NCBI GenBank assembly: GCA_033442325.1
Contig: JAWQFM010000016.1
Coordinates: 378,097-442,096, forward strand
Origin: Salpingoeca rosetta
Taxonomy: Eukaryota > Protista > Choanoflagellata
Direction: 5' to 3'
DNA: 64,000 bases
In this document: positions 2,775 to 45,903 of the stretch, one piece after another
How the letters are laid out: each line of letters opens with the position of its first letter
Position numbering within the stretch: the first letter of the stretch is position 1
Notes under the pieces: model-generated
Databases searched by the model: none
The model's input: the letters and a program-made list of their open reading frames with translations, nothing else
Told to the model about the DNA's origin: nothing
Translations under genes and position numbers: made by a program

Positions 2775-3809
2775 TCACTGCATGCCAAGGGTGGCCGGGA
2801 TGCTCTCGTAGAGGCTCTTGAGAGCTTGGCGACGACGCACGTCTTCTGGGTCGCTCTTGGCCAGGACCGACTCCTTCAGTGCGGCATTCTCCTCCTCGTA
2901 CGCGCCGACTTCCTCGGTGGAGAAGGGCGTATCCACGCTGGCTGGAAACATCAAGGAATAGCCGAGGCCGAGCAGGTGCTCCTTGGTCACTCGCTCCACA
3001 ATCTTGATCTGGTCCTCCGTGAGCTGCTTCTTGTACTTCTCGGTGTTCGTTGCCAAGATTTCACCCTGTGCCAGGTTGCGCCACATCTCGGACGCTGCGG
3101 CCCGCTTGCGCCCCTCCTCGCTCTGCGCAAAGTCCTGGCGGTAGGTTGGGTTGAACTTGAAGCCGAGGAAGGTGCAGAGGCGCTGCAGCGTTGAGTCTGG
3201 GTCTGCTGTCAGCTCCTCGTACGAAACCTTGATGACTTGTTTGGGGTAGGTCTGCAGCACGTGTTGCACGTGGTCCTGCAGCTTGGCCCATTTCTTGGCG
3301 ATGGCGTACACGTGCTTCTCACCATCGATAGCCTTGGTGAAGGACAGGGCCACCTCACGAGGGTCGCGGTAGAGGTAGATGAACTTGACACGGCTTCCGT
3401 AGTAGTCGACAAGCTTGTCGGCGTGCTTGGAGTAGTTCATGGCCTTGCAGATCCACTTGGTGCAGCCGCCTTGAATGGCGTTGGTGTTCATGAGGGCATC
3501 GAAGACACCCATCACGCTGCGTTCAGCGCATGCCTCGAGAACCTCCTGCGTGCTCACCCCATCCATGCTCTCCCAGGGCACAGGATTGGCGCGCACGATG
3601 TTGCGGGAGAGTGAGACAAATGCCTCAAAGGTGGCGTCATCTTGGAGGCGAGACTCGTCAACAACGCGCGGGAGAACCTCGTCGAGGTACTTGGGAGGAT
3701 GGGGTGCTGCGACCTTATCGTGCAAAGACAGCAGAAGCTGAAGGAGGTTGGAACCGCTCCGCTGGCATCCAATCAGGAACACGGGCTGCACGTCGTCTTG
3801 GCTGGCCAT
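2775..3809 (-). CDS. Intronless PAPS-dependent sulfotransferase (Sulfotransfer_3-like, bacterial-type), 344 aa from MASQDD
   Basis: 5'-PSB loop FLIGCQRSGSNLL and 3'-PB motif YLYRDPREVALS; VSYEELTADPDSTLQRLCTFLG. Single uninterrupted ORF with no signal anchor. Confidence 0.9.
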   Translation of the reverse strand: MASQDDVQPVFLIGCQRSGSNLLQLLLSLHDKVAAPHPPKYLDEVLPRVVDESRLQDDATFEAFVSLSRNIVRANPVPWESMDGVSTQEVLEACAERSVMGVFDALMNTNAIQGGCTKWICKAMNYSKHADKLVDYYGSRVKFIYLYRDPREVALSFTKAIDGEKHVYAIAKKWAKLQDHVQHVLQTYPKQVIKVSYEELTADPDSTLQRLCTFLGFKFNPTYRQDFAQSEEGRKRAAASEMWRNLAQGEILATNTEKYKKQLTEDQIKIVERVTKEHLLGLGYSLMFPASVDTPFSTEEVGAYEEENAALKESVLAKSDPEDVRRRQALKSLYESIPATLGMQ

Positions 3810-3967
3810 GGTGCTTCGTGTTTGGTGCTTTTGGTGCTTGGTGAAGTGGTGCTTGGTCAAATGATGGTGCTAGGTGCTAGGTGCTTGGCGCTTGGCGCTT
3901 GGTGCTTGGCGCTTGGCGCTTGGTGGGCGTTTGATGCTTTGTGAGGAGGTATGTGGGCGTGCCGGTA

Positions 3968-11231: not shown

Positions 11232-11306
11232 ACAACAACAGCAAACACGTCCGTGCACGGATACGGTGATGCATGCATGGTGGTGTAGTGGTGAGGGTGA
11301 CATGGC

Positions 11307-11484
<178 letters not shown>

Positions 11485-32493: not shown

Positions 32494-35183
32494 TCATCGA
32501 TCTGTGTCGCTGTGCATGTCGGAGAGGTGGCCTCTAAACGACCCCTGCAGTGATGATGGGAACTGCGGCGGTTCTTCGTACTCTGGTGTTGGCGGGCGCG
32601 TGGATGGGCCGGACCAGTATGCGGGCTCCTCCCACACACCTGCCGCCATAGCCACATCCCCGCTCATGTCCAGGTTACTGTCGTCCAGTGGAATCACATC
32701 TCGTCCTGCACGAGCCTCTGCTTTAACCCGGGGTTGCCTAGCACCGCCATGCGCACCACCACGAGCCCCGTAGTCGTCATCGTCATCATCGCCAACCGCG
32801 CTGCTGTCGCCTGCGATGCTTGCAGGCTCGCTGCGTGACATCCAGGCACGTGGCGTGCGGCCCGTGCGAACACCGCGGTCGTCCTGGGCATCTGCCTCGT
32901 GGCCACGACGAAGACGCCCGCCATGCACGCGCTTCGGGGTCCCTGTTGGTGTCGTCGATGTTGGTGTCGATGGTGCTGTGTTCTTCACGGCCACGCGCGA
33001 CGGCAATGGCATCTCAGCCAGCACGTCGCCTCCGCTGTTGATGCGGCCATCGTACAACGGCACATGGCCCATCCGACTCTCAAGCGTGACATCGGCGCTC
33101 TTCGCGTAGTCACCATCGCCATCGTCGTCATCAATGCTCTCCAGGTCATCTATGGTGTCTGCATCGCCGTCTCCGTAAAAGCTGCTGTCACCGCGCGGGT
33201 CACGATCCGAGCTGGCGCTGCCTCCGCCATACAGCCACGCATCAGAGTACTGGGGCGGTGCCTGGTACGGCGGCACGTCGAACACATCGCTGTCCACACC
33301 ACGCACGGGCAGCGGTAATGGTGGTGGTGTCATGCGGCCATCCCTCTGCCAATCAGAGGCGATTGATGCAGCCCCGGTCATGTGCATGTCAAGCACGCCG
33401 TCCTCAGCGTACAGTGAGCCACCAAACTCGCTCGTGGGCCGCTTGCTCACGTCGCTCATGCTTCCCCAGTACTCGTCTGCGTCGCTCGTGTAGTCGTCGT
33501 CTCCATCCGTCGTCACGTCGTCCACTTCATATGGGGTGTACGCTGGTGGCGGTCGGTATGGTGGTGCCTGCAGACCCTCGCGACTAGCCCCGCCGCCAGC
33601 GAGCCACTCAAACTGCGGGCGCGGGCGCCGGCCTGAGTGGGACAGGCGCTCGTAGATGCGGTCGCGAAGGCTGGCACGCCTGCTGGCTTCGCCCTTGCTC
33701 AGCCCAGCGCCCATGCCGCCCTTCTGCATCGCCACCCTCTCCACGGAGGCGTAGGTTGGCGGCGCAATGTAGGCAGGCAAGTCCGGTGCTGCCGGCACGC
33801 GGGTCAACTCCGACACACGGCGAGACTTCTGCCGCCACAGCCGCAGCACCACCACAAGCGCAAGCACCGTCACCAGCACAAGCACCGTGAGAACAGCTAC
33901 GATGGCCATCTCCGTGGTGGAGAAGCGGTTGACGGCGCTCGGGTTGGAGCCGCCGTCATCGCACCCACACAGGCAGGCGCCAGCAGCATCCCCCACGGTC
34001 ACACTCGAGACGGTCAGAGCCGTCGCATCCGTCACATAGGGCGAGGCCGCCTGCAGCGTGGGCAAGAACGTGCCATCGCTCCTGGCAGCGCCGTCGTGCA
34101 TGAGGCAAGCAACTGTGGCGTGGGTCTCGGTAGGCATGGACACGGCGACATCAACGAATACAGCGGTACCAAGAGATGTTCCTTCCTCAACCGTCACCGC
34201 GGCCATCCCCTGCAGACGTGGCCGTGGTCCTGTGGCTGCTGCGCCTCCTGTGCGTATCGCAGCTGCTGCCTCGACGGGTGTGCCAAAGTCCGTCACGTCG
34301 TACGCGCAGGAATGAGCCGAGTAGAACCCAGCAATGTTGTCAACAGTCACAAGGCCCTGCGCGCTGGCAGCCAACAGCTCTGGTGGAATTGGAAAGTCAA
34401 ATGTCGTTGCCTTGTCCACGTCGCCAGAGACAAGGGCTTGCAGCTGCTGCAGTGGGATGGCACTGAGCAAGTTGAGGCTGGTTGCAGACGCCAGCGCCTG
34501 TGTCACATCTGTGAGGAAGGCTCCGATATCGGCCGCTGTGGCATTTGTGATGGATCCATCAAGGTCGGACAGCGTTACGGTGACAGCCACGGTCGTGTCT
34601 GCGCCATCGGGGTGCACACACGTGCAGACGCGATCAGATGTCACTGTTGGAGACGCCGCCTCGTGCTCAAACACGTCACACTCCGACACGCGCGCACACG
34701 CTGCATCAGAGGTGGGTGTGGGCAATACAGCAATGTACTCTTGCTCGCCGTCAAAGCGACATGTGGTCTGGTTGACGCACACACGGTCGCTTGTTGCAGT
34801 GGGTGCAACGACCTGATACTCTGTCGACAGGTCGCACTCAGTCAACAAAGCACACTCCCGATCAGCAAGCGCAGTGCAGCTGGATGTCTCATACTCCATT
34901 GCAGGGTTGCATGTTCGACATGGGGCACATTCTCGGTCGCTTGTGGAGGATGGCCCAGTCAGCTCATATTGGCTCTCACCGCACACCGTCAATGCTAAGC
35001 ATGTGCCGTTTGCAGTCCTGAATTCGGTGTCGAGGCACTCTGCAGTTGTTGTAGTTGTAGTTGTAGTTGTAGTTGTAGTTGTAGTTGTAGTTGTAGTTGT
35101 AGTTGTAGTTGTAGTTGTAGTTGTAGTTGTAGTTGTAGTTGTTGTAGTTGTAGTTGTAGTTGTAGTTGTAGTTGTAGTTGTAG

Positions 35184-35236
<53 letters not shown>

Positions 35237-35261
35237 ATCGTTGTTGTAGTAGTAGTTGTAG

Positions 35262-35310
<49 letters not shown>

Positions 35311-36200
35311 AGTAGTAGTTGTTGTTGTTGTTGTGGTTGTTGTAGTAGTTGTTGTTGTTGTTGTTGTGGTTGTTGTTGTGGTTGTTGTTGTGGTTGTGGT
35401 TGTGGTTGTGGTCGTCGTCGTTGTCGTGGTTGTGGAAGTTGTAGTCGTCGTCGTTGTCGTGGTTGTGGAAGTTGTAGTCGTGGTGGTAGTTGTAGTCGTT
35501 GAGGTTGAAGTTGTACTTGAGGTTGTACTTGTAGTTGTTGTGGTCATCGTTGTCGTTGTAGTGGTCGTTGTATCACCCGAGGAGGTGGACGTTGTGGATG
35601 TCGTGGTGGTTGTGCTTGTTGTAGTGGTGGTTGTGGAAGTTGTCGACAACCCACTTCCAGTACTTGTGCTTGTTGAGGACGTTGAGCTGGAGGTGCCGCT
35701 TCCTGTTGAACTTGTCGTCGTGGTTGTCGTGGTAGTTGTCGTGGTGGTTGTTGTAGTTTTTGTTGGAGTAATGGGGATGCTTGTGGATGATGATGTAGAT
35801 GAAGATGAAGTGCCACTTCCAGTCGAAGTTGTCGTGGTGGTCGTGGTAATCGTGGTGGTCGTGGCGGTGGTTGTTGTTCCGCTCCCAGTGTCTGTTGTGC
35901 TCGTTGTCGTCGTGGTTGTGCCACTTCCTGTTGATGTTGTGGAAGTTGTCGATGTCGATGTTGTCGTTGTTGTACCACTTCCAGTGCTGCTTGTGCTGCT
36001 CGTTGTAGTTGTCGTCGTCGTTGTGGTTGTGCCACTTCCCGTGGACGTTGTTGTTGTTGTTGTTGTAGTAGTAGTAGTAGTAGTTGTTGTTGTTGTAGTA
36101 GTAGTTGTTGTAGTAGTTGAAGTAGTAGTTGTTGTTGTGCTGATGGTTTCTGTACCACTACTCGATGTTGTTGTTGTAGTTGTTGTTGTTGTTGTTGTAG

Positions 36201-36240
<40 letters not shown>

Positions 36241-37033
36241 GGAAGTTGTTGTTGTAGTAGTAGATGACGACGATGAGGATGACGTTGGTAATGTTGTCCC
36301 GCTTCCAGTTGAAGTCGTTGTGGTAGTTGTTGTCGTGCTGGTTGTGCTTGGTGTTGTAGTTGTTGTGCTGGTCGTTGTTGGCGTTGGGGTTGGTGTGGGT
36401 GATGGCAGGATGGCGGTGCCTGTTGACGAGGATGGCCTTGGGGACACTGTTGGTGCTGAAGGCGGCACGAGCGGAGGCGGGCTTGATGGAACCAATGGAC
36501 TGCTGGGCAACACTGGCGGTGTTGCCGGCTGTGAGGGCGTTGGTAGCGGCGACGGCGACGTTGGTGGCACGAGCGGCGGCGGTGATGTGGGCGTCGTTGG
36601 TGGTGCAGTGGGCGGTCTGGGCAGTGGCGTGGGCACAACAGGCCTCGACACAACCACGCTGGTCGTCGCAGGGACAGCGGTTGCTGTTGTCGATGCGCTG
36701 GGACTTGCAAAAGTGGACGGCCGCAGTAGTGTAGGCGACGCAGACGAAAAGATGGGTACACCTGTGCTGGGAACAGGGGTTTGGCTCGGAACCACGCTGA
36801 CAACCGATGACGGCGTGGGCGAAATGCTTCCACTTGACACGACGGGAACACTGATGCTCTGCGATGGCAGCACACTTGACGGTGCAGTTGCTGAGGACGA
36901 GACGGGCGCGATTGTGGCAGTTGTCACAATTGACGTCTGTGTCGATATGGGCACGCTTGCGCTTGACCGCGGCAGGCTTGAGACAACTGATGACGATGTC
37001 GTGGCAGTTGTGGTTGTGGTTGTGGTTGTGGTT

Positions 37034-37068
<35 letters not shown>

Positions 37069-37367
37069 AGTTGTGGTAGTTGTGGTAGTTGTTGTTGTCG
37101 TCGTCTTTGTTGTGGTGGTGGTAGTTGTGGTAGTGGTGATTGTGGTGGTTGTTGTCGTGTCGCCCGAGAAGCCTGTTGTACTTGTGGTGGTGGTGGTTGT
37201 CGGTGGCGATGTTGATGTTGATCCACTGCCAGAACTCGATGTTGTCGTCGTTGTCGTACCTGTTATTGTCGTGGACGCCGTTGTTGAGTCAAGTCCACTT
37301 CCTGTGGTGGTGGTTGTTGTTGTTGTTGTAGTTGTAGTTGTAGTTGTAGTTGTAGTTGTAGTTGTAG

Positions 37368-37401
<34 letters not shown>

Positions 37402-39640
37402 AGTTGTAGTTGTAGTTGTAGTTGTAGTTGTAGTTGTAGTTGTAGTTGTTGTTGTTGTTGTTGTTGTTGTAGTTGTAGTTGTTGTTGTTGTTGTGGGAAG
37501 GGACGTTGTACTACTCACGTCTCCAGACGAAGACGTCGTGGTCGTGGTCGTTGTCGTTGTGGTTGTCGTTGTCGTGTCTCCACTGCCTGTTGAGGACGTT
37601 GAACCAGCAGTACTTGTGGTTGTCTGCACAGAACTTCCAGAGGAGGTCGTGTCAGCATCTGTCGCTGTGGTTGTCGTAGTCAACGTGGTTGTTGCGGCTG
37701 TGGTGGTTGTGGTTGTTGGTGTTGTTGTAGTCACCACCGGCGATGGGCTTGGCGTTGGCTGAAGTGTGGTAGATGCACTTTGCGTTGCTGTGGGCGTGGG
37801 CGTGTGCGTGGGCGTTGGTGTTGGCGTGACCGTAGCAGCGCTGGTTGGCGGCTGTGGCGATGACAGCGGCGGCGGCGACTGAGGAACGTCGGGGGACGAG
37901 GGCACCGGTGGCGGTGAGGATGACGGCAGCGTGTCCGTGAACAGCGGCGAAGGCGGGCTGAGTGGCGGTGGTGAGATGGGACTGCTGGGCCGAATGGGCA
38001 CGCTGGACGGCGGTGGTGTCACAACAGGCACTGTCGGTGACGGAGAGGGCGATGTAGATTGTGCCAGCGATGACGACACAGTGGCAACCGAAGACGACAC
38101 AAGCGGCACAGCTGTCGTTGTTACCACACCCTCGCTGACAATGCTGCTGCTGATGCTACTGCTGCTGCTGCTGGGAACAGTCGCTGACGAGGGTGGAGGG
38201 ACCAAGGATGAAGTCAACGTCGAAGAAGGTGAAACACTGCTGTCCACGGCTGATGTGGGCACAGGAGACGGCTGAGAAGCCACGGCTGAACGGGTGGAAA
38301 GCACCGAACTACTGCTGGCTCTCAAATCGCTGCTCGAGGGTGCAAGCACAGATGTCGCTGTTGGGAAGGGCGTGCTTTCGATGGGACCAAGCCCGCTGAC
38401 TGCTGAAGATGCGGGTGATGGAGACGGTGTTGGCTGTGCAGAGAACACCGTCGTGAGGATTGGCGCAGAAGAGGAGGATGTCACCGCGATGGAAGCCGAT
38501 GGTAGCTGAGGCGTTGGCGACGGACTCCCACCGGACGCTACCACTGTCCCAATTGCACTTGCCGTTGCTGTGGCTGCTGGTGTTGTTGTTGTCGTGAAAA
38601 GAGAAGACGAAGAAGGAGTAGGCAGCGTCGACGGGGATGGCGAGGGTGAGTTCAGCGCCAAGGATGACGATGGTGCAATTGGAGGAGACACGGAGCTCGG
38701 TGAGGGCACCTGGATCTGTGAGCTGCTGATGGGCAGCACCACAACAGAGGAGGATGGTGGCCCAACAAGTCGACTGGAGGCTGCCGGAATAATCAGGCTT
38801 GAGGACACCACGGGCACAACTGGACCAGTGGAATCCGTGGTGGTCGTAGTTGTTGCTGTTGTTGATGTGGTCGTGGTAGTTGTTGTGGTACTTGTCGTGG
38901 TACTTGTCGTGGTCGTGGTTGTTGTGATTGTCGACACGTCACCAGATGAACTTGAAGTCGTCGTAGTTGTGCTGGTCGTCGTTGTAAGTGGTGACACCGT
39001 GGGGTCACCAATTGCCTGCACTGTGGCTTGAGCGCCATACGCTGACTGAACCCACGCCTCAAACTCAAGAATGAAATCGCGAAGCGCGGTCGCAACTGCG
39101 TCTGCCTTTGGTGCATCCGTAATCACTTGGATCACAAGCACCACCCCATCGCCACCAACAGCCTCTCGCCTCGATCGCACTTGCTCATCAAGCCGCAGCA
39201 CAACATCCTCCTCAACCACAAGCGGCGCCAGCAGCTCCACAATCGCACCACGCACCTCTTCTGCATCAATCGCACTCACGTTCACATTGCTGATCACCAG
39301 CGTGTGCGACACAAGCACGCGTGTCACCACCACAGGAAACGACGATGTGCTTGTTGATGTCGGCGCCAGTGTCACCTTGCCCCCACCACTGCTTGTGCTT
39401 GTGCTTGTGGTGGTAGTTGTTGTGGTGCTTGTGATAGTGCTTGTGCTTGTCGTGGTAGTTGTTGTGGTGCTTGTGCTTGTGATAGTGGTTGTCGTGGTTG
39501 TCGTGGTGGAAGACGACCCACTTCCTGTGTCTGTTGTTGTCGAGGTTGTGGACGTGGTGGCGGTTGTAGTGGACGTACCGCTTCCAGTTGATGATGATGT
39601 TGTTGTAGTTGTTGTGGGAAAGACTCCACTTTCCGTCGTT

Positions 39641-39705
<65 letters not shown>

Positions 39706-42665
39706 TGTCGCTGTCGCCGTGGTTGCAGTTGTGGTGCTGGTGGTGGTTGTTGTGGTAGTGGTAGTGGTCGTCGTGGTGCCACTTCCGGTATTGGTTGTTG
39801 TGGTGGGGGTGGTCGTTGTCGTTGTGCTGATTGTCGCGCTGGTCGTGGCTGTTGTGGTTGTTGGCGTGCTGGTCATGGTTGTTGTGGTGGCCGATTTCGT
39901 CATCGTGGATGTCGCACCGCTTTCACCGCCGGTTGTGCTGCTTGTTGTGGCTGTCGTGGCTGTTGTGGTCGTGGTCGTGGGTGTTGTGGTTGTCAATGAG
40001 ATGGTTGAGCTGGAGGTTGTGGTCGTGTCGCCGCTTCCATTCTCCGTGGTCGTGAACCCCGTTGTCGTTGAACTTCCTGTTGATACCGTGGAGGTTGTGC
40101 TTGTGATCGTGCCACTACCACTGCTGCTTGTGCTTGTCATTGTCGGCGTGGGTGTTGTGCTTGTGGTTGTGGTGCTTCCGCTGCCACCACCTGTCGTGGA
40201 GGTTGTCATGGAGGCTGTCGTGGAGGCTGTCGTGGAGGCTGTCGTGGAGGCTGTCGTGGAGGCTGTCGTGGAGGCTGTCGTGGAGGTTGTCATGGAGGTT
40301 GTCATGGAGGCTGTCGTGGAGGCTGTCGTGGAGGTTGGCGTGGAGGTTGGCGTGGAGGTTGGCGTGGAGGTTGGCGTGGAGGTTGGCGTGGAGGTTGGCG
40401 TGGAGGTTGGCGTGGAGGTTATCGGCAGCGACGTGGTCGTGTCGCCACTTTCATTTCCTGCAGTTGTCGAAGTTGTCGAAGTTGTCGTGTCACCACTGGC
40501 AGTCATTGACGTGGTCGTGATTGGAAGTGTGGTAGTGGTGGTGGACACAGTTGTAGGATCTGCTGTGGAAGACGTCGTACTGGTGCTGTCAGCGCCTGTG
40601 GTGGTTGTTGTGGTCGTTGTGGTCGTTGTTGTTGCTGTTGTTGTGAAAGGGTTTGGTGTCGGCGATTGCTGTGGTGTGACTGGCGCTACAGAGGTGACAG
40701 GTGCAATGATGGCTGTGGACTGCGGCGGGTTGATCAGGATGCTGCTCGCTGTTGGCTGCACGACCGAACTCGACACCACAATCACCTGCGGTGGTGGCGT
40801 TGGCAACACGCTTGACACCGACACACTGCTGCTGATGATGCTGCCCGTGGTGGCCAACGTGCCGCTGCTGCTTGCCACCGAGGGCTGGACAGCGGCTGAT
40901 GACACAATGCTGTCGGGCACAACCAATGTTGCAGATGGAGACGGGAGTGCTGATTGCACCGAAGACACGGATGGTGACGGTGATGATGATGATGGTGGTG
41001 CATGCGACACGGCAGGGGTTGGAAGAGATACCGTCGTTGTGCGACCTGCCGATGTCGCTGTCGGAGACACGCTGCCGCCACCAATGTTGCTGCTTGAGGT
41101 TGTAGTTTGCGAGGACAGCAGGGATGGAGAGGGCAGCAGCGCGGATGCGGCAGCTGTTGAAGCAGGTGCGCGCGTCATCGAAGGTGTTGACAGCGTGGTC
41201 AGTGCGAGGGATGTGCTCGCTTCAACCGAACCGTCGTCTGCCGTGGCTGATGGCGGCAGGGTTGCTGCAGATGATGATGGCGGTGAGAGGGATGGCAGCT
41301 GCGTTGGCAGCGGCGAGGCAGACTGTGCCGCTGTTGCTGCAGGTGTGGCGCTGGCGCGTGCTGGCAAGCTGCTTGAAGCCGATGACGTGGTGGGCAGCGA
41401 TGCTGTTGTCTGTGACACCTGATGCATGATCGAGCTCCTTGGAGGCACCACGACCACCGACGACACCGGCACCAACACCGAAGACCGCACTGGTGCAATC
41501 ATCTAAGCGTGACAGCAAACCACAATACAGTATGGCGAGAGAGAGTGTGTGTGTGCAGCAGCGGCAGTTGAAGCGTGAGCTCTCATGTGAAAGGTGTAAT
41601 TTGTGCGCGCATACTGCCGTGCGCAGATATCGATGCATGGTGGCTTGTCACTCAACACGTCAACAACACAACCTGATTAACACGACATGCACACTGTCGA
41701 CTGGCATGTGCTCGGGACACATACACTCACACAAACACACACGCGCGCGCGCGCCCGCGCACACACACCCACTCACTCACTCACCCACACAACCACACAC
41801 ACACTCACTCACTCACTCACTCACCCACACAACCACACACACACTCATTCACACAAGCATGCGCACTGTGTGTCGGACCTGTGTCGATGAAGGTGCCAGT
41901 GCTGGTGTTGAAGAGACGGGTGCAGGCACAAGCAAGCTCGGCTGTATGACAGTGGACGTGCCGGTTGTTGGCTGCTGACTCATGATGGCCGAAGTCGTGA
42001 ACGCTGGTGATGGCGTTGGAGCAGCTGCTGCTGTCGCTGGCGTCGAGGCCACCAACACTGTTGAAGTGGGGCCTGCGGGCTTGCGTGTTGGTGAGGCTGG
42101 TGGTCTCGGCAGTGTTCTGTTGAAGACGGGCGGCGGCGTTGTTGGAAACAGCGCGAGAAGGTGGTCGACGGTGACGTTGCCCGATGCATCACGCCTTCCT
42201 ATTCTCCTTTCTGCGCCTGCTGCAAGCACCAAAGCATGAAGGTGAAATCAGTGCTGCGCATGTGCGGTCCACGCACAAGCTGTGTTGGCACATACAAGCG
42301 CACATACAGGCACACTGGCAAGCGTACACAGAAACACATGCTTCCGTCTTCGTGCAGAGGAAACAAACGACACACGCACAGGGTTGCACAAACAAGAAAC
42401 GACACACACGCCATCCTCAACGCACGATTGCGCGAGCTGGGCTGCCCCAGACCGTACCGTGGCTGTGACCCCGGTTGGTGCTCAGGGCAGGATTGTTGTG
42501 GTGTGGCGCAACGGTGGTTGCTGTGGGTGCGGTTGGTGCCACTGCGGAGGCCGTTGTGACCTCTGAGTTGGAGGTAACTGTGACACACACCACCACAAGG
42601 GCAAACGCAAAGAGGCGCAGCAGCGCCAGCACCCCAGAGCGCACAGGGGCTCGTCGCTCTGCCAT
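32494..42665 (-). CDS. ~3,180-aa mucin/proteoglycan-like type I membrane protein; exons 42665-42458, 42216-41879, 41502-32494
   Basis: Signal peptide MAERRAPVRSGVLALLRLFAFALVVVCVTVTS; phase-compatible GT..AG introns; Thr/Ser/Pro-rich ectodomain; SEA-like module ~38990-39325; Cys repeats ~34617-35037; single TM 33844-33909 followed by RLWRQKSRR; ~450-aa cytoplasmic tail. Confidence 0.85.
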
Positions 42666-43154
42666 GTTGGTGCCGCCGCAGCTGCTGATCTGGTTCAACG
42701 GGCGTCTCAGCATGCCACGACCATGGCAAGGCGAAGACAACCGCAACTCAAGAGTGCGTTGACAAGCGCGTGCGCCGTTCTTGAGTGGGGCTGTGTGGCG
42801 CAGTATTGTGCTAGGCAGGATATGACTTGGGAGAGAGAACACGGCAAGCAAACACGACCCAAACGAGGACGGGACCAGCTGCTCAAAGTAAAGGCAGGTG
42901 GGTCTGCTCTGTTGTGTGCTGTTGTGTGCTGTTGTGTGCTGTTGTGTGCTGTTGTGGTGTTGATGGTGGCTACTGGTTGGTTGATTGGGGGTGAAGGTGA
43001 AACAATAAGGGGAAGAAGGAATGTACGCTGCGGGTGTTGTGCGGAAAAGTTGCTGGTGTCTTCACAAAACCAACTTTTTTTTTATTTTCCTGATTCGGGG
43101 GTGGTGTGCAATTGGCAAACCAGGCTCAAGCGGTGCAAATTGCAACGAGTGCCG

Positions 43155-43168
43155 TTTGCGCGGGCAAA
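43155..43168. promoter_or_regulatory. Degenerate, near-palindromic E2F-like site upstream of FANCI
   Basis: TTTGCGCGGGCAAA ~60 bp before the FANCI ATG; the minus strand TTTGCCCG fits the relaxed consensus WTTSSCSS. Confidence 0.4.
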
Positions 43169-43225
43169 ATACAAACGCAAGGAAAGGAAGGACACTGGTT
43201 GGAACGTGTTTGTGCAGCAGCAAAG

Positions 43226-45903
43226 ATGGTGGTGGAAGCACGGCGACGTCGGCGCGAGGATGACGATGATGATGACGATAATGATTGTGGCGGGCAGACT
43301 GAACAACAGCAGGTGGTAGAAGGTGAGGAGGAGCATGAAGGTGGGGAAGACGAGGAAGACGATGAAGATGAAGAAAAAGGTGGCACATTGCAGGAAGACG
43401 AGGAGGACACGGAGGCGATGCCTGCGGTGGACACTGCCGATGACGGTGATGGTGGCGCTGCTGCTGCTGCTGCTGAAGAAGAAGAAGAAGCAGAAGAAGA
43501 AGAAGGTGTGCAGGGGCGAAAGCACCACCGGTTGACGCAGCGGGGTCGTGGGCCAGAGAACGTTGAAGTCGTTGGAGACTTTGCCACCTTGAAGAAGAGA
43601 ACGCGCGATATGCTTCGCACAGGACACAAGGCCAGCCCTCTTCTTCGCCCCATCTTCAGCCAAGACAACGCCGCCTTTGACGGTCTGTCTGCATGTGTGT
43701 GTGTGTGGGGGGGGTGCGTTGTACGTGTATGTACGTTTGTGTGTGGGTGTGGGTGTGGGTGTGGGTGTGGGTGTGGGTGTGGGTGAGTGGGTGTGGGTGA
43801 GTGGGTGTGGGTGAGTGGGTGTGGGTGTGGGTGAGTGGGTGTGGGTGAGTGGGTGTGGGTGTGGGTGAGTGGGTGTGCGTTGTGCGTGTATGCACGTTTG
43901 TATCTCTGTCTCCTTTGTCGCTTCCCTTGCGTTTGTATGTGGTCGGCCAACTCAACCCACCCCCACCCCCGCTCCGCCTTCCCTTCCCTCCCCTCACATA
44001 CACCCTTCCACAGAATCACCGCGCGGGGACTCGTTTCGGGAGAGCGTTTGCTTGTTTCTGATGCAGCTGATTGAGGACCCTGGGCTGCACGCGACGCTGT
44101 GCTCGGACCTGCTGGACGTGCTGATGGTGGGCGTGGACTCGCTCAGCGGCGACGGGTTGGTGGCCGTGTGCACGCAAATCCTGCGCGCCGTCAAGGCAGC
44201 CAACGGGAACGAAATCACCCAAAACTCGACCACGGCGACGCCCATGTCCCCCAACAACAAGCCGTCGCCGTCCAAGCGCAGGGGCACGCAGCCGCGCACG
44301 GGCACGGGCAAGGTGTTTGAGCTCATGCCCAAGGCGCTGTCTCGCCTGGAGACGCTGGACGCCATCACGGGCGAGCTGGACACGGGCAACGCGTTCAAGT
44401 CGTTCTTCCTGAACCGGCTGTGCAACATGCCGTGGCCACCGCAGCACGTGCTGCCGATTGCCGACGCCTTCAAGACGGTCAACTTTGACGCGGACCAGTT
44501 CAAGTTTGCCGCTGCCAAGCTGGTGCGGTCGCTGCACGATGTGGCCACGGAGGAGGTGCCACCGCTCGTGTACCAGCTCCTGTTGCTCTCTGCCAAGGGC
44601 CAGCGCGCCGTCATTCTGCAGGGGGTGCTTGCGTTTTGTGCGGCGCAGTCGTCAGCGGCGGTGCAGGCGCCGACGGCTGCGCTTCGCCACGCCCTCACTC
44701 AGGCCCAAGGCACCGTCCTCATGCACATCTCCTTTGCCGTCAAGCAGGACCAGGTGTGTGTGTGTGTGTTGTGTGTGTGTGTGTGTGCTTGCGTGTGTGC
44801 GTGTGTGTTTGAAGAAGGAGAATGCAACACGCGTGGTTGGATGTGTTTGCTTGGTTGGTCGCTCATCTCCGCCGCCCTCCCATTCGCCGTGTTGTGATAA
44901 CCGACTACATGCCGTGTCAGGACCTTGGACGAGAGCTGTTGAAACTGATCAAGGCGGAGGCAAGCGTGTCACCGTTTACTGTTGCCGCTGCCCTCTGTCT
45001 TCTCACCGTTCCCCGGTTTGAACAGACCGTGCAGTCCGTATTCATGGTGAGCCATTGCCCCGTGTCTTGTGTCATGCGTGCGTGTGTGCGTGTGTGTGTG
45101 TGTGTGTGTTTGAGTGTGTGTGTGTGTGTGTTTGAGTGTATCTCAACATCATTTTGCCATGACGCTCGCCCACACATGCACACACACCCATGCACACTCG
45201 TGCTCCACGCACGGCCATCACCGCCGAATTCACCACTGCCCAGAACATGACCACGAAGCACGCTGCGACGCAGGACCGCCTGTGTCGTGCCGTCTGGCTC
45301 GCGCCATTCTGCAAGCAGAGCCTTGATCCACTCCGCACTTTCAAGGTGGCGCTGTGTGTGTGTGTGTGTGTGAGTGTGTGTGAGTGTGTGTTTTTGTGAT
45401 TGAGTGTGTGTGTGTGTGTGTAAACATCTCGTCTTTCGGTTTGTGCATATGTTTGCACTTGCAGTTGCTGCTGCTGCTACTGCTGCGAATCTCTTTCCTT
45501 GCTTAGATGCAGCGATTCTTTGTGGCTCATCACTCCCCCCCCCCCACACACACGTTGTACATGTGTGTCGCAATTGGCATCACCAAACCAGACTGTGGTC
45601 AACGGGACCGCCAACGGCTGGGACTACATCACCGCCCCGCTGCTGCGCCTCTGCTTCTACTTCCTCGACTCTGTCAAGAGCGCGTCAGTTGTGTGTGTGT
45701 GTGGGGGGGGGGGTGTTTGTGTGTGGGTGTGGGTGTGGGTGTGGGTGTGGGTGTGGGTGTGGGTGTGGGTGGGTGTGTGGGTGTGTGTGTGGGTGTGAAT
45801 GGGGGATGTCGACGTACTCCACTCATTTTCGTTGTCGTGGCAAGGTCTCCCATCACCACTCATCCTGTCACACGCAACCCAATTGTGCTTTTTCACACAC
45901 TCA

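Follow-up and report, generated by a model that had tools for sequence, protein, structure and literature searches.

A 64,000-nucleotide stretch of the genome of the choanoflagellate Salpingoeca rosetta (contig JAWQFM010000016.1, positions 378,097 to 442,096; the whole of it is referred to here as the window) carries on its minus strand, at 32494-41502, one uninterrupted open reading frame (ORF) of 3002 codons plus stop that encodes a giant transmembrane mucin of predicted type I topology. The Thr-rich stalk of the protein is punctuated by Ser-Gly (SG) dipeptides, which a first-pass annotation made from the sequence alone had proposed as attachment sites for glycosaminoglycan (GAG) chains, with the protein as a candidate chondroitin core protein. 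The SG motifs are far more frequent than composition predicts, and they conform to the minimal xylosyltransferase rule only. The reading given first place here, to which we assign about an even chance, is that they may serve as flexible, sparsely glycosylated hinges or as minor glycan sites, with GAG chains on few or none of them.

The mucin character of the protein is displayed by its composition. The stretch 35040-40520, which lies within the ORF, corresponds to residues 328-2155, and these 1828 residues comprise 858 Thr, 343 Ser and 158 Pro (47%, 19% and 9%, respectively). Tandem repeats in the stalk are without a regular unit and show periods of 3-42 nt only. The assembly comprises 55.4 Mb in 68 contigs; a mostly intronic 42-nt arm adjoining S. 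rosetta rpl36a (PMC7314544) has exactly one perfect match in it and none in the control, which confirms the species. A 669-aa single ORF with catalytic and lectin domains (G000:C3:743629-745635, plus strand) matches human GALNT1 with an E-value of 9.4e-121, and the combined GT2, Glyco_transf_7C and Ricin architecture is found at two or more loci, including loci on contig C14. An ortholog of C1GALT, the core-1 synthase, has been reported in S. rosetta (PMC8022947). Judged by gene content, the organism is clearly predicted to initiate mucin-type O-glycans, and since clear polypeptide GalNAc-transferases are encoded, the stalk should be regarded as first of all mucin. The Thr runs would be densely O-GalNAc-glycosylated by the GALNT1-like enzymes, and the stalk of about 2,150 residues would then be an extended bottle-brush with a length of some hundreds of nanometres, as estimated from the contour length that glycosylated mucin domains usually have. 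Such a bottle-brush may act as a glycocalyx spacer or as an anti-adhesive coat. The S-T-G-S-G-T core and the x-S-G-D sequences represent discrete, Gly-flanked breaks in the Thr brush, and the minority of SG sites that adjoin acidic residues would be plausible xylosylation sites.

The SG dipeptides number 35 across the whole ectodomain, 33 of them in residues 328-2155, which agrees with the figure of about 35 reached earlier by hand. The motif G-S-G is present 17 times, TGSGT 9 times, S-G-D 8 times, ESG 3 times and SGSG twice, and the spacing between SG dipeptides is irregular (2 to 252 residues). When residues 328-2155 are shuffled as a whole, 13.9 +/- 3.2 SG are obtained (z = 5.9), and local shuffles within blocks of 10-100 residues give 14-19, with at most 1 in 3000 reaching 33. 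G-S-G appears 0.8-1.7 times and S-G-D 0.2-0.4 times in shuffled sequences. It should be noted that the SG counts are not independent events, and that inheritance from one unit inflates every one of these shuffle tests. A frequency no higher than that of composition-matched shuffles had been named by the first-pass annotation as a result that would count against its proposal; the observed frequency is higher (33 against 14-19). The Gly residues of the Thr runs do fall mostly within SG motifs, as had been noticed: SG or G(SG) accounts for 44 of the 59 Gly of the Thr blocks and for 48 of the 74 Gly of residues 328-2155. Several of the 15 Gly found outside SG motifs in the Thr blocks adjoin one.

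How well these sites suit GAG attachment can be judged from enzyme specificity and from mapped sites. Human XT1 requires that Ser (position 0) be followed by a small residue at +1; at -1 any residue without charge is accepted, at +2 Val or Thr is favoured, and acidic neighbours are generally preferred (PMC5992326). Known GAG sites are usually Gly-flanked and have an acidic patch at -4 to -2 (PMC5992326), and the chondroitin sites mapped in C. elegans follow a stringent E/D-G/A-S-G motif (PMC8418075). In the mucin all 35 sites have Ser followed by a small residue, nearly all are located in low-complexity Thr/Ser sequence, and at 17 of them the acceptor Ser has Gly on both sides. An Asp or Glu is present at -4 to -2 in 4 of the 35 and within -4 to +5 in 16, and none of the 35 fits E/D-G/A-S-G. 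The best-looking candidate sites are of the types E-N-G-S-G-D, N-E-S-G-D, S-T-G-S-G-D, D-T-G-S-G and S-S-S-G-D. Motifs alone are considered ambiguous and insufficient to identify proteoglycans (reviewed in PMC8418075).

The genome also encodes enzymes of GAG synthesis. A xylosyltransferase-1-like gene with many small exons is found at G000:C10:1332000-1338000 on the minus strand, colinear with human XT1 residues 113-382 (PDB 6EJ7; the matching pieces are listed in Table 1). The next family, core-2 GlcNAc-transferase, reaches an E-value of just 0.013. Pfam exon scans for xylosyltransferase (PF12529 and PF02485, E <= 0.001) gave no match, which is a false negative; a weak 16-bit match pointed to the multi-exon gene. 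Runs of N are present in the locus, and open frames at L007 107-446 are repeated at 3475-3814, a partial duplication that suggests an assembly problem. In addition, a GT43 glucuronyltransferase gene and genes of the chondroitin GalNAc-transferase (CHGN) type are present. With XT1-like, GT43 and CHGN genes encoded, GAG priming is therefore possible, and with both GALNT and XT1-like genes encoded, mucin-type as well as GAG-type initiation is therefore open to the mucin protein.

Two other mucin-domain genes of S. rosetta are informative about the SG motifs. The first, at G000:C18:135438-155998 on the minus strand, encodes a giant mosaic protein. Its poly-Thr/Ser mucin modules, like those of the mucin in the window, are punctuated by [G/E/S]-S-G-x; it displays 23 sites of the type [G/E/S]-S-G-[M/T/F/V]-E, with Ser coded by AGT in 20 of the 23. 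Unlike in the window mucin, the motif sits in a longer regular unit, T-S-T-S-T-S-T-x-S-G-M/T-E-P, with Glu nearly always adjacent, and the rest of the protein consists of cadherin, EGF, LamG-like and furin-like repeats. The C18 protein is arguably a better candidate GAG core than the mucin gene in the window. The second gene is located just upstream of the window (G000:C16:367800-376000, plus strand) and encodes a mosaic mucin that combines VWA-like, LamG-like and furin-like modules. It has long poly-Thr sequences without SG (one open frame has 281 Thr), and G-S-G-S-G clusters are found near its C-terminus only. An assembly gap of N is present in the middle of this gene. Because hundreds of poly-Thr residues in this neighbouring mucin are without SG, Ser-Gly punctuation is a discrete element of some mucin domains and not an automatic feature of S. 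rosetta poly-Thr. Within the window itself, positions 11283-11483 of the minus strand encode, in another reading-frame context, a separate Gly-free stretch of 67 residues of which 59 are Thr; this is probably part of a further mucin-domain gene of the window.

Several observations weigh against hinges as the role of the SG motifs. Known GAG sites classically have Gly on either side of the acceptor Ser, as in G-S-G, and XT1 is lax at all positions except +1 and likes Thr at +2 (PMC5992326). The 16 sites with Asp or Glu within -4 to +5, and the 23 acid-flanked SG sites of the C18 protein, which resemble modification sites more than hinges, point in the same direction. In addition, a hinge needs no Ser specifically between glycines.

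The principal alternative is a mucin-proteoglycan hybrid, in which at least some of the SG serines carry chondroitin and the protein is one substrate among several of EroS, the bacterial chondroitinase that triggers S. rosetta mating. We consider this possible, at a likelihood somewhat below that of the hinge reading. The sites first in line would be ENGSGD, NESGD, STGSGD, DTGSG and SSSGD, with chains started by xylosylation through the S. rosetta XT1-like enzyme and extended to chondroitin or chondroitin-6-sulfate. If such chains were trimmed, steric as well as electrostatic repulsion would fall, and cells could adhere cell body to cell body without a dedicated sensor. That S. rosetta makes chondroitin, as the first-pass annotation stated, has been demonstrated biochemically, in unsulfated and 6-sulfated forms (preprint 10.1101/139022). 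The products of chondroitin digestion fail to bring about swarming, and a structural modification of surface proteoglycans has been proposed as the trigger (10.1101/139022). Lyase-treated cells are reported to adhere mainly cell body to cell body and independently of the collar (2026 preprint 10.64898/2026.06.27.734982), and the mainly cell body-cell body contacts obtained by treatment of the EroS type are those the hybrid would give. These published observations bear on the organism and not on the mucin gene in particular. S. rosetta also carries chondroitin lyase-like genes of its own (PMC7971027).

The hybrid is further favoured by the colinear XT1-like exons together with the GT43 and CHGN genes, by the large excess of SG, GSG and SGD over shuffles, and by the maintenance of the motif through synonymous drift. 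The SG motifs are missing from most poly-Thr of the neighbouring mucin, which argues that they are not a by-product of composition. On the other side, the acidic patch is lacking at most sites and the strict chondroitin motif at all of them, and no stalk-bearing ortholog was found in which conservation of the sites could be checked. A Fam20C-type xylose kinase (PF06702) had no match in the genome search, which does not show its absence. Thus the proposal of a chondroitin core is supported in part: the organism makes the polymer and encodes the enzymes, and all 35 sites obey the XT1 rule, but an acidic patch is present at 4 of 35 and E/D-G/A-S-G at 0 of 35. The stronger version, in which the hybrid is the main physiological EroS substrate and removal of its chains unmasks cell-body adhesion and so starts swarming and mating, is considered unlikely.

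The codons of the motifs bear on their origin. The G-S-G serines are AGY-coded in 17 of 17 cases, whereas AGY codons make up 33% for the remaining Thr-block Ser, and because of this the G-S-G motifs probably descend from one ancestral unit and not from 17 independent events. The conserved core, S-T-G-S-G-T, has 11 synonymous spellings, and identity in the 30-nt flanks (0.56 and 0.54) is marginally above that of random Thr-block windows (0.51 +/- 0.036). On account of the 11 spellings, the near-background flanks and the few decayed copies, we read the motif as old and retained while the surrounding Thr runs turn over, with no recent copying; it should be noted that the motifs counted are the intact ones by selection, so that this is not a strict test. 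A genome-wide search with the codon pattern [S/T]-T-G-S(AGY)-G-T gave 25 matches against 30 for the control, i.e., no overall enrichment. The matches cluster in two loci with six each, the mucin gene and G000:C18:136438-145810.

A single origin would also suit a neutral explanation, in which unequal recombination spread a single repeat unit and the SG motifs are its functionless, unselected relics. Mucin repeats are known to expand and contract quickly, and counts inherited from one unit would account for part of the excess in every shuffle test. However, despite 11 synonymous spellings and near-background flanks there are very few decayed copies (15 Thr-block Gly lie outside SG), and the unrelated giant C18 protein, on another contig, has this motif too, again with an AGT serine. 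We therefore regard neutral relics as improbable. The first-pass annotation had also suggested that the protein is a sensor for the EroS cue; such a sensor, with chondroitin loss transduced via the transmembrane (TM) helix and the PPxY tail to start swarming and mating, would suit a type I membrane protein that has a long tail with three PPxY-type motifs, and would suit the thought that a cell-surface change is the signal since digestion products induce no swarming (10.1101/139022), but it is unsupported speculation and the least probable of the readings, as nothing ties the gene to mating, simple loss of repulsion requires no sensor, the tail is without a signalling domain recognisable by Pfam, and the genome has many other candidate core proteins.

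The layout of the gene and protein is given in Table 1. A stop codon is present immediately 5′ of the first ATG in the 3002-codon ORF. The ORF of the predicted signal peptide, about 1 kb upstream, starts with an ATG at 42665 and displays a basic n-region and a hydrophobic core that gives way to a short polar end; candidate donors (GT) of this first exon are found at 42560-42421. It could be connected with the main exon by any of several GT-AG introns that keep the frame and measure 920-1150 nt. Exon 1-exon 2 junctions were checked for frame compatibility by script, and the large exon alone was used in homology searches. Sequencing reads over 40650-43300 gave nothing but contigs that cover the region patchily and show no joint, which speaks neither for nor against the splice. 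Every word sampled from 32494-35040 occurs in sequencing runs, the RNA nature of which is a guess.

Table 1. Features of the mucin gene (window coordinates; residues are those of the main exon) and pieces of the XT1-like gene (human XT1 residues)
Feature	Position	Strand	Basis
Candidate first exon, predicted signal peptide	42452..42665	-	frame translation and in-frame GT-AG search
Main exon: stalk, Cys repeats, TM helix, tail	32494..41502	-	translation
S/A/V/P-rich block 1, residues 1-250, single SG at residue 213	40753..41502	-	composition profile
Thr/SG block 1, residues 280-712, 12 SG	39367..40665	-	motif count
Folded insert, about residues 713-831	39010..39366	-	AlphaFold2 single-sequence model
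Short Thr block 1b, residues 832-896, one SSSGDV site	38815..39009	-	motif count
S/V/P block 2 then Pro-rich block 2, residues 897-1255	37738..38814	-	composition profile
Thr/SG block 2, residues 1256-1513, 7 SG	36964..37737	-	motif count, composition profile
S/V/P block 3 then Pro-rich block 3, residues 1514-1699	36406..36963	-	composition profile
Thr/SG block 3, residues 1700-2160	35023..36405	-	motif count, composition profile
Four TNFR-type Cys-rich repeats, about residues 2161-2294	34621..35022	-	Pfam PF00020, BLASTP against P0003
Juxtamembrane domain, residues 2295-2531, ends C-L-C-G-C, one SG at residue 2359	33910..34620	-	alignment with P0003
Single TM helix, residues 2532-2553	33844..33909	-	hydrophobic run in translation
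Cytoplasmic tail, 449 residues, acidic	32497..33843	-	translation
XT1-like piece	XT1 residues 113-155		E 2.9e-7
XT1-like piece	XT1 residues 200-302		E 3.8e-16
XT1-like piece	XT1 residues 337-382		E 1.3e-6

Three cycles of an S/V/P block, a Pro-rich block and a Thr/SG block, as described earlier, can be recognized in the stalk, but the first Pro-rich block is weak and an insert of about 120 residues splits the first Thr block. Sites in Thr/SG block 1 include NESGD, ENGSGD, GGESGA, NTGSGT, STGSGT and DTGSGS. Those of block 2 include STGSGD, SSSGDV, TGSGLD, SSSGSGS and GFSGD and are separated by pure poly-Thr runs. Block 3 has 10 SG within residues 1734-1975, eight of the form [ST]TGSG[TL], followed by a nearly all-Thr run of about 180 residues without SG. 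The Cys repeats match the TNFR/NGFR family (PF00020) with an E-value of 8.5e-8 and 32.9 bits against a cut-off of 29.4, and TNFR_c6 is the only Pfam domain found in residues 2150-3002. The tail displays three P-x-Y-x-x-P-P-x-Y double-tyrosine motifs (PPTY, PPAY and PPQY); no Pfam domain was detected in it, and no death domain or other recognisable signalling domain. Opposite the mucin exon, the plus strand has long ORFs at 34874-37762 (962 aa) and 39071-41422 (783 aa), which mirror the ACN codon runs in antisense and are not necessarily genes. The ACN codon runs of the mucin exon also result in a strong positive GC skew across 34-44 kb.

The insert in the first Thr block was modeled from residues 705-835 (AlphaFold2, single sequence) and folds into a ferredoxin-like beta-alpha-beta-beta-alpha-beta sandwich with a moderate predicted local distance difference test score (pLDDT) of 70.6. 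A Foldseek search against the PDB gave generic ferredoxin-like matches only (E >= 0.006) and nothing specific, and Pfam gave no match on the insert, SEA included. The turn of the insert reads G-D-G-V-V-L-V, with no Ser after Gly, and the autoproteolytic G-S-V-V-V site is absent. The insert may be SEA-like. As an established label, "SEA-like" was dropped, since Foldseek found no specific match; the turn that would correspond to the SEA cleavage site is without the Ser nucleophile. A similar model of the juxtamembrane domain (pLDDT 38.7) was unusable and was discarded.

To look for orthologs with a mucin stalk, a word search was made with the C-terminal 853 residues. Two proteins, P0003 and P0004, are 24% identical to the mucin over a cassette of TNFR repeats, C-L-C-G-C juxtamembrane domain, TM helix and first PPxY motif, but have ectodomains of the FG-GAP/VCBS type and no Thr stalk. 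Other proteins of comparable length found in this search have the TNFR repeats alone in common with the mucin, and no stalk-bearing ortholog was among them. When residues 2296-3002 were searched by themselves, proteins of 389-1237 aa gave no match, and no paralog of the juxtamembrane domain was found in the genome at E <= 1e-5. The TNFR-type Cys repeat itself is matched at least 119 times among large ORFs of the genome; it is a mass-amplified extracellular building block and not a sign of TNF receptor membership. The first tail PPxY motif aligns with that of P0003, and the anchor cassette including this PPxY site is conserved beyond S. rosetta. Because P0003 has the anchor cassette but lacks a mucin stalk, the stalk is a lineage-specific addition to a conserved anchor cassette.

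The protein can be compared with known systems. Like the animal transmembrane mucins of the MUC1, MUC4 and MUC16 type, it displays a very long Pro/Thr/Ser stalk, an ectodomain that includes a small alpha/beta domain, a single TM helix and short linear motifs in the tail, in an organism that has GALNT and C1GALT-type enzymes. Unlike them it has no Pfam SEA match, no G-S-V-V-V site and no regular tandem repeat, it has TNFR-type Cys repeats near the membrane, and no sequence homology was detected. Dystroglycan likewise has a single TM helix between a mucin-like ectodomain and a tail with PPxY motifs. However no dystroglycan-type domain was found by Pfam in the C-terminal 853 residues of the S. 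rosetta protein, and the anchor of the latter is a TNFR-repeat cassette common to non-mucin proteins of choanoflagellate type.

S-G-D and G-S-G sequences occur at the GAG sites of syndecans, thrombomodulin and CD44, which are part-time or membrane proteoglycans whose ectodomains are rich in Ser/Thr, and of perlecan domain I. The mucin resembles these proteins in having Ser-Gly acceptors of the G-S-G and S-G-D types in a disordered, presumably O-glycosylated extracellular region. In perlecan the GAG sites precede a SEA fold (PMC6266596), and as in perlecan domain I, SG sites of the S. rosetta mucin are found just before a small alpha/beta domain. The acceptor sites of syndecans, thrombomodulin, CD44 and perlecan are usually in acidic patches, whereas here acidic residues are at -4 to -2 in 4 of 35 sites, and there is no homology. 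Thirty-five sites on one mucin stalk would be an aggrecan-like number, unlike that of the syndecan, thrombomodulin or CD44 type. The C. elegans chondroitin proteoglycans are similar in combining SG acceptors with an invertebrate-grade chondroitin system, but their E/D-G/A-S-G motif fits 0 of 35 sites of the S. rosetta mucin.

The transmembrane mucin in itself is of a known kind; what appears to be new is such a mucin on a choanoflagellate TNFR-repeat/PPxY anchor and with candidate GAG sites. No choanoflagellate proteoglycan core protein, EroS substrates included, is named in the literature searched. The mucin gene is a reasonable entry on a list of candidate core proteins, and a ranked list of this kind makes the question of the EroS target testable with the CRISPR tagging and truncation already used in S. 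rosetta. If the mucin-proteoglycan reading is true, the protein would be the first such hybrid known outside animals and the first identified choanoflagellate proteoglycan core protein. If it is false, the gene still encodes a giant transmembrane mucin on a choanoflagellate-specific TNFR-repeat anchor. The mucin-type glycocalyx architecture thus predates animals.

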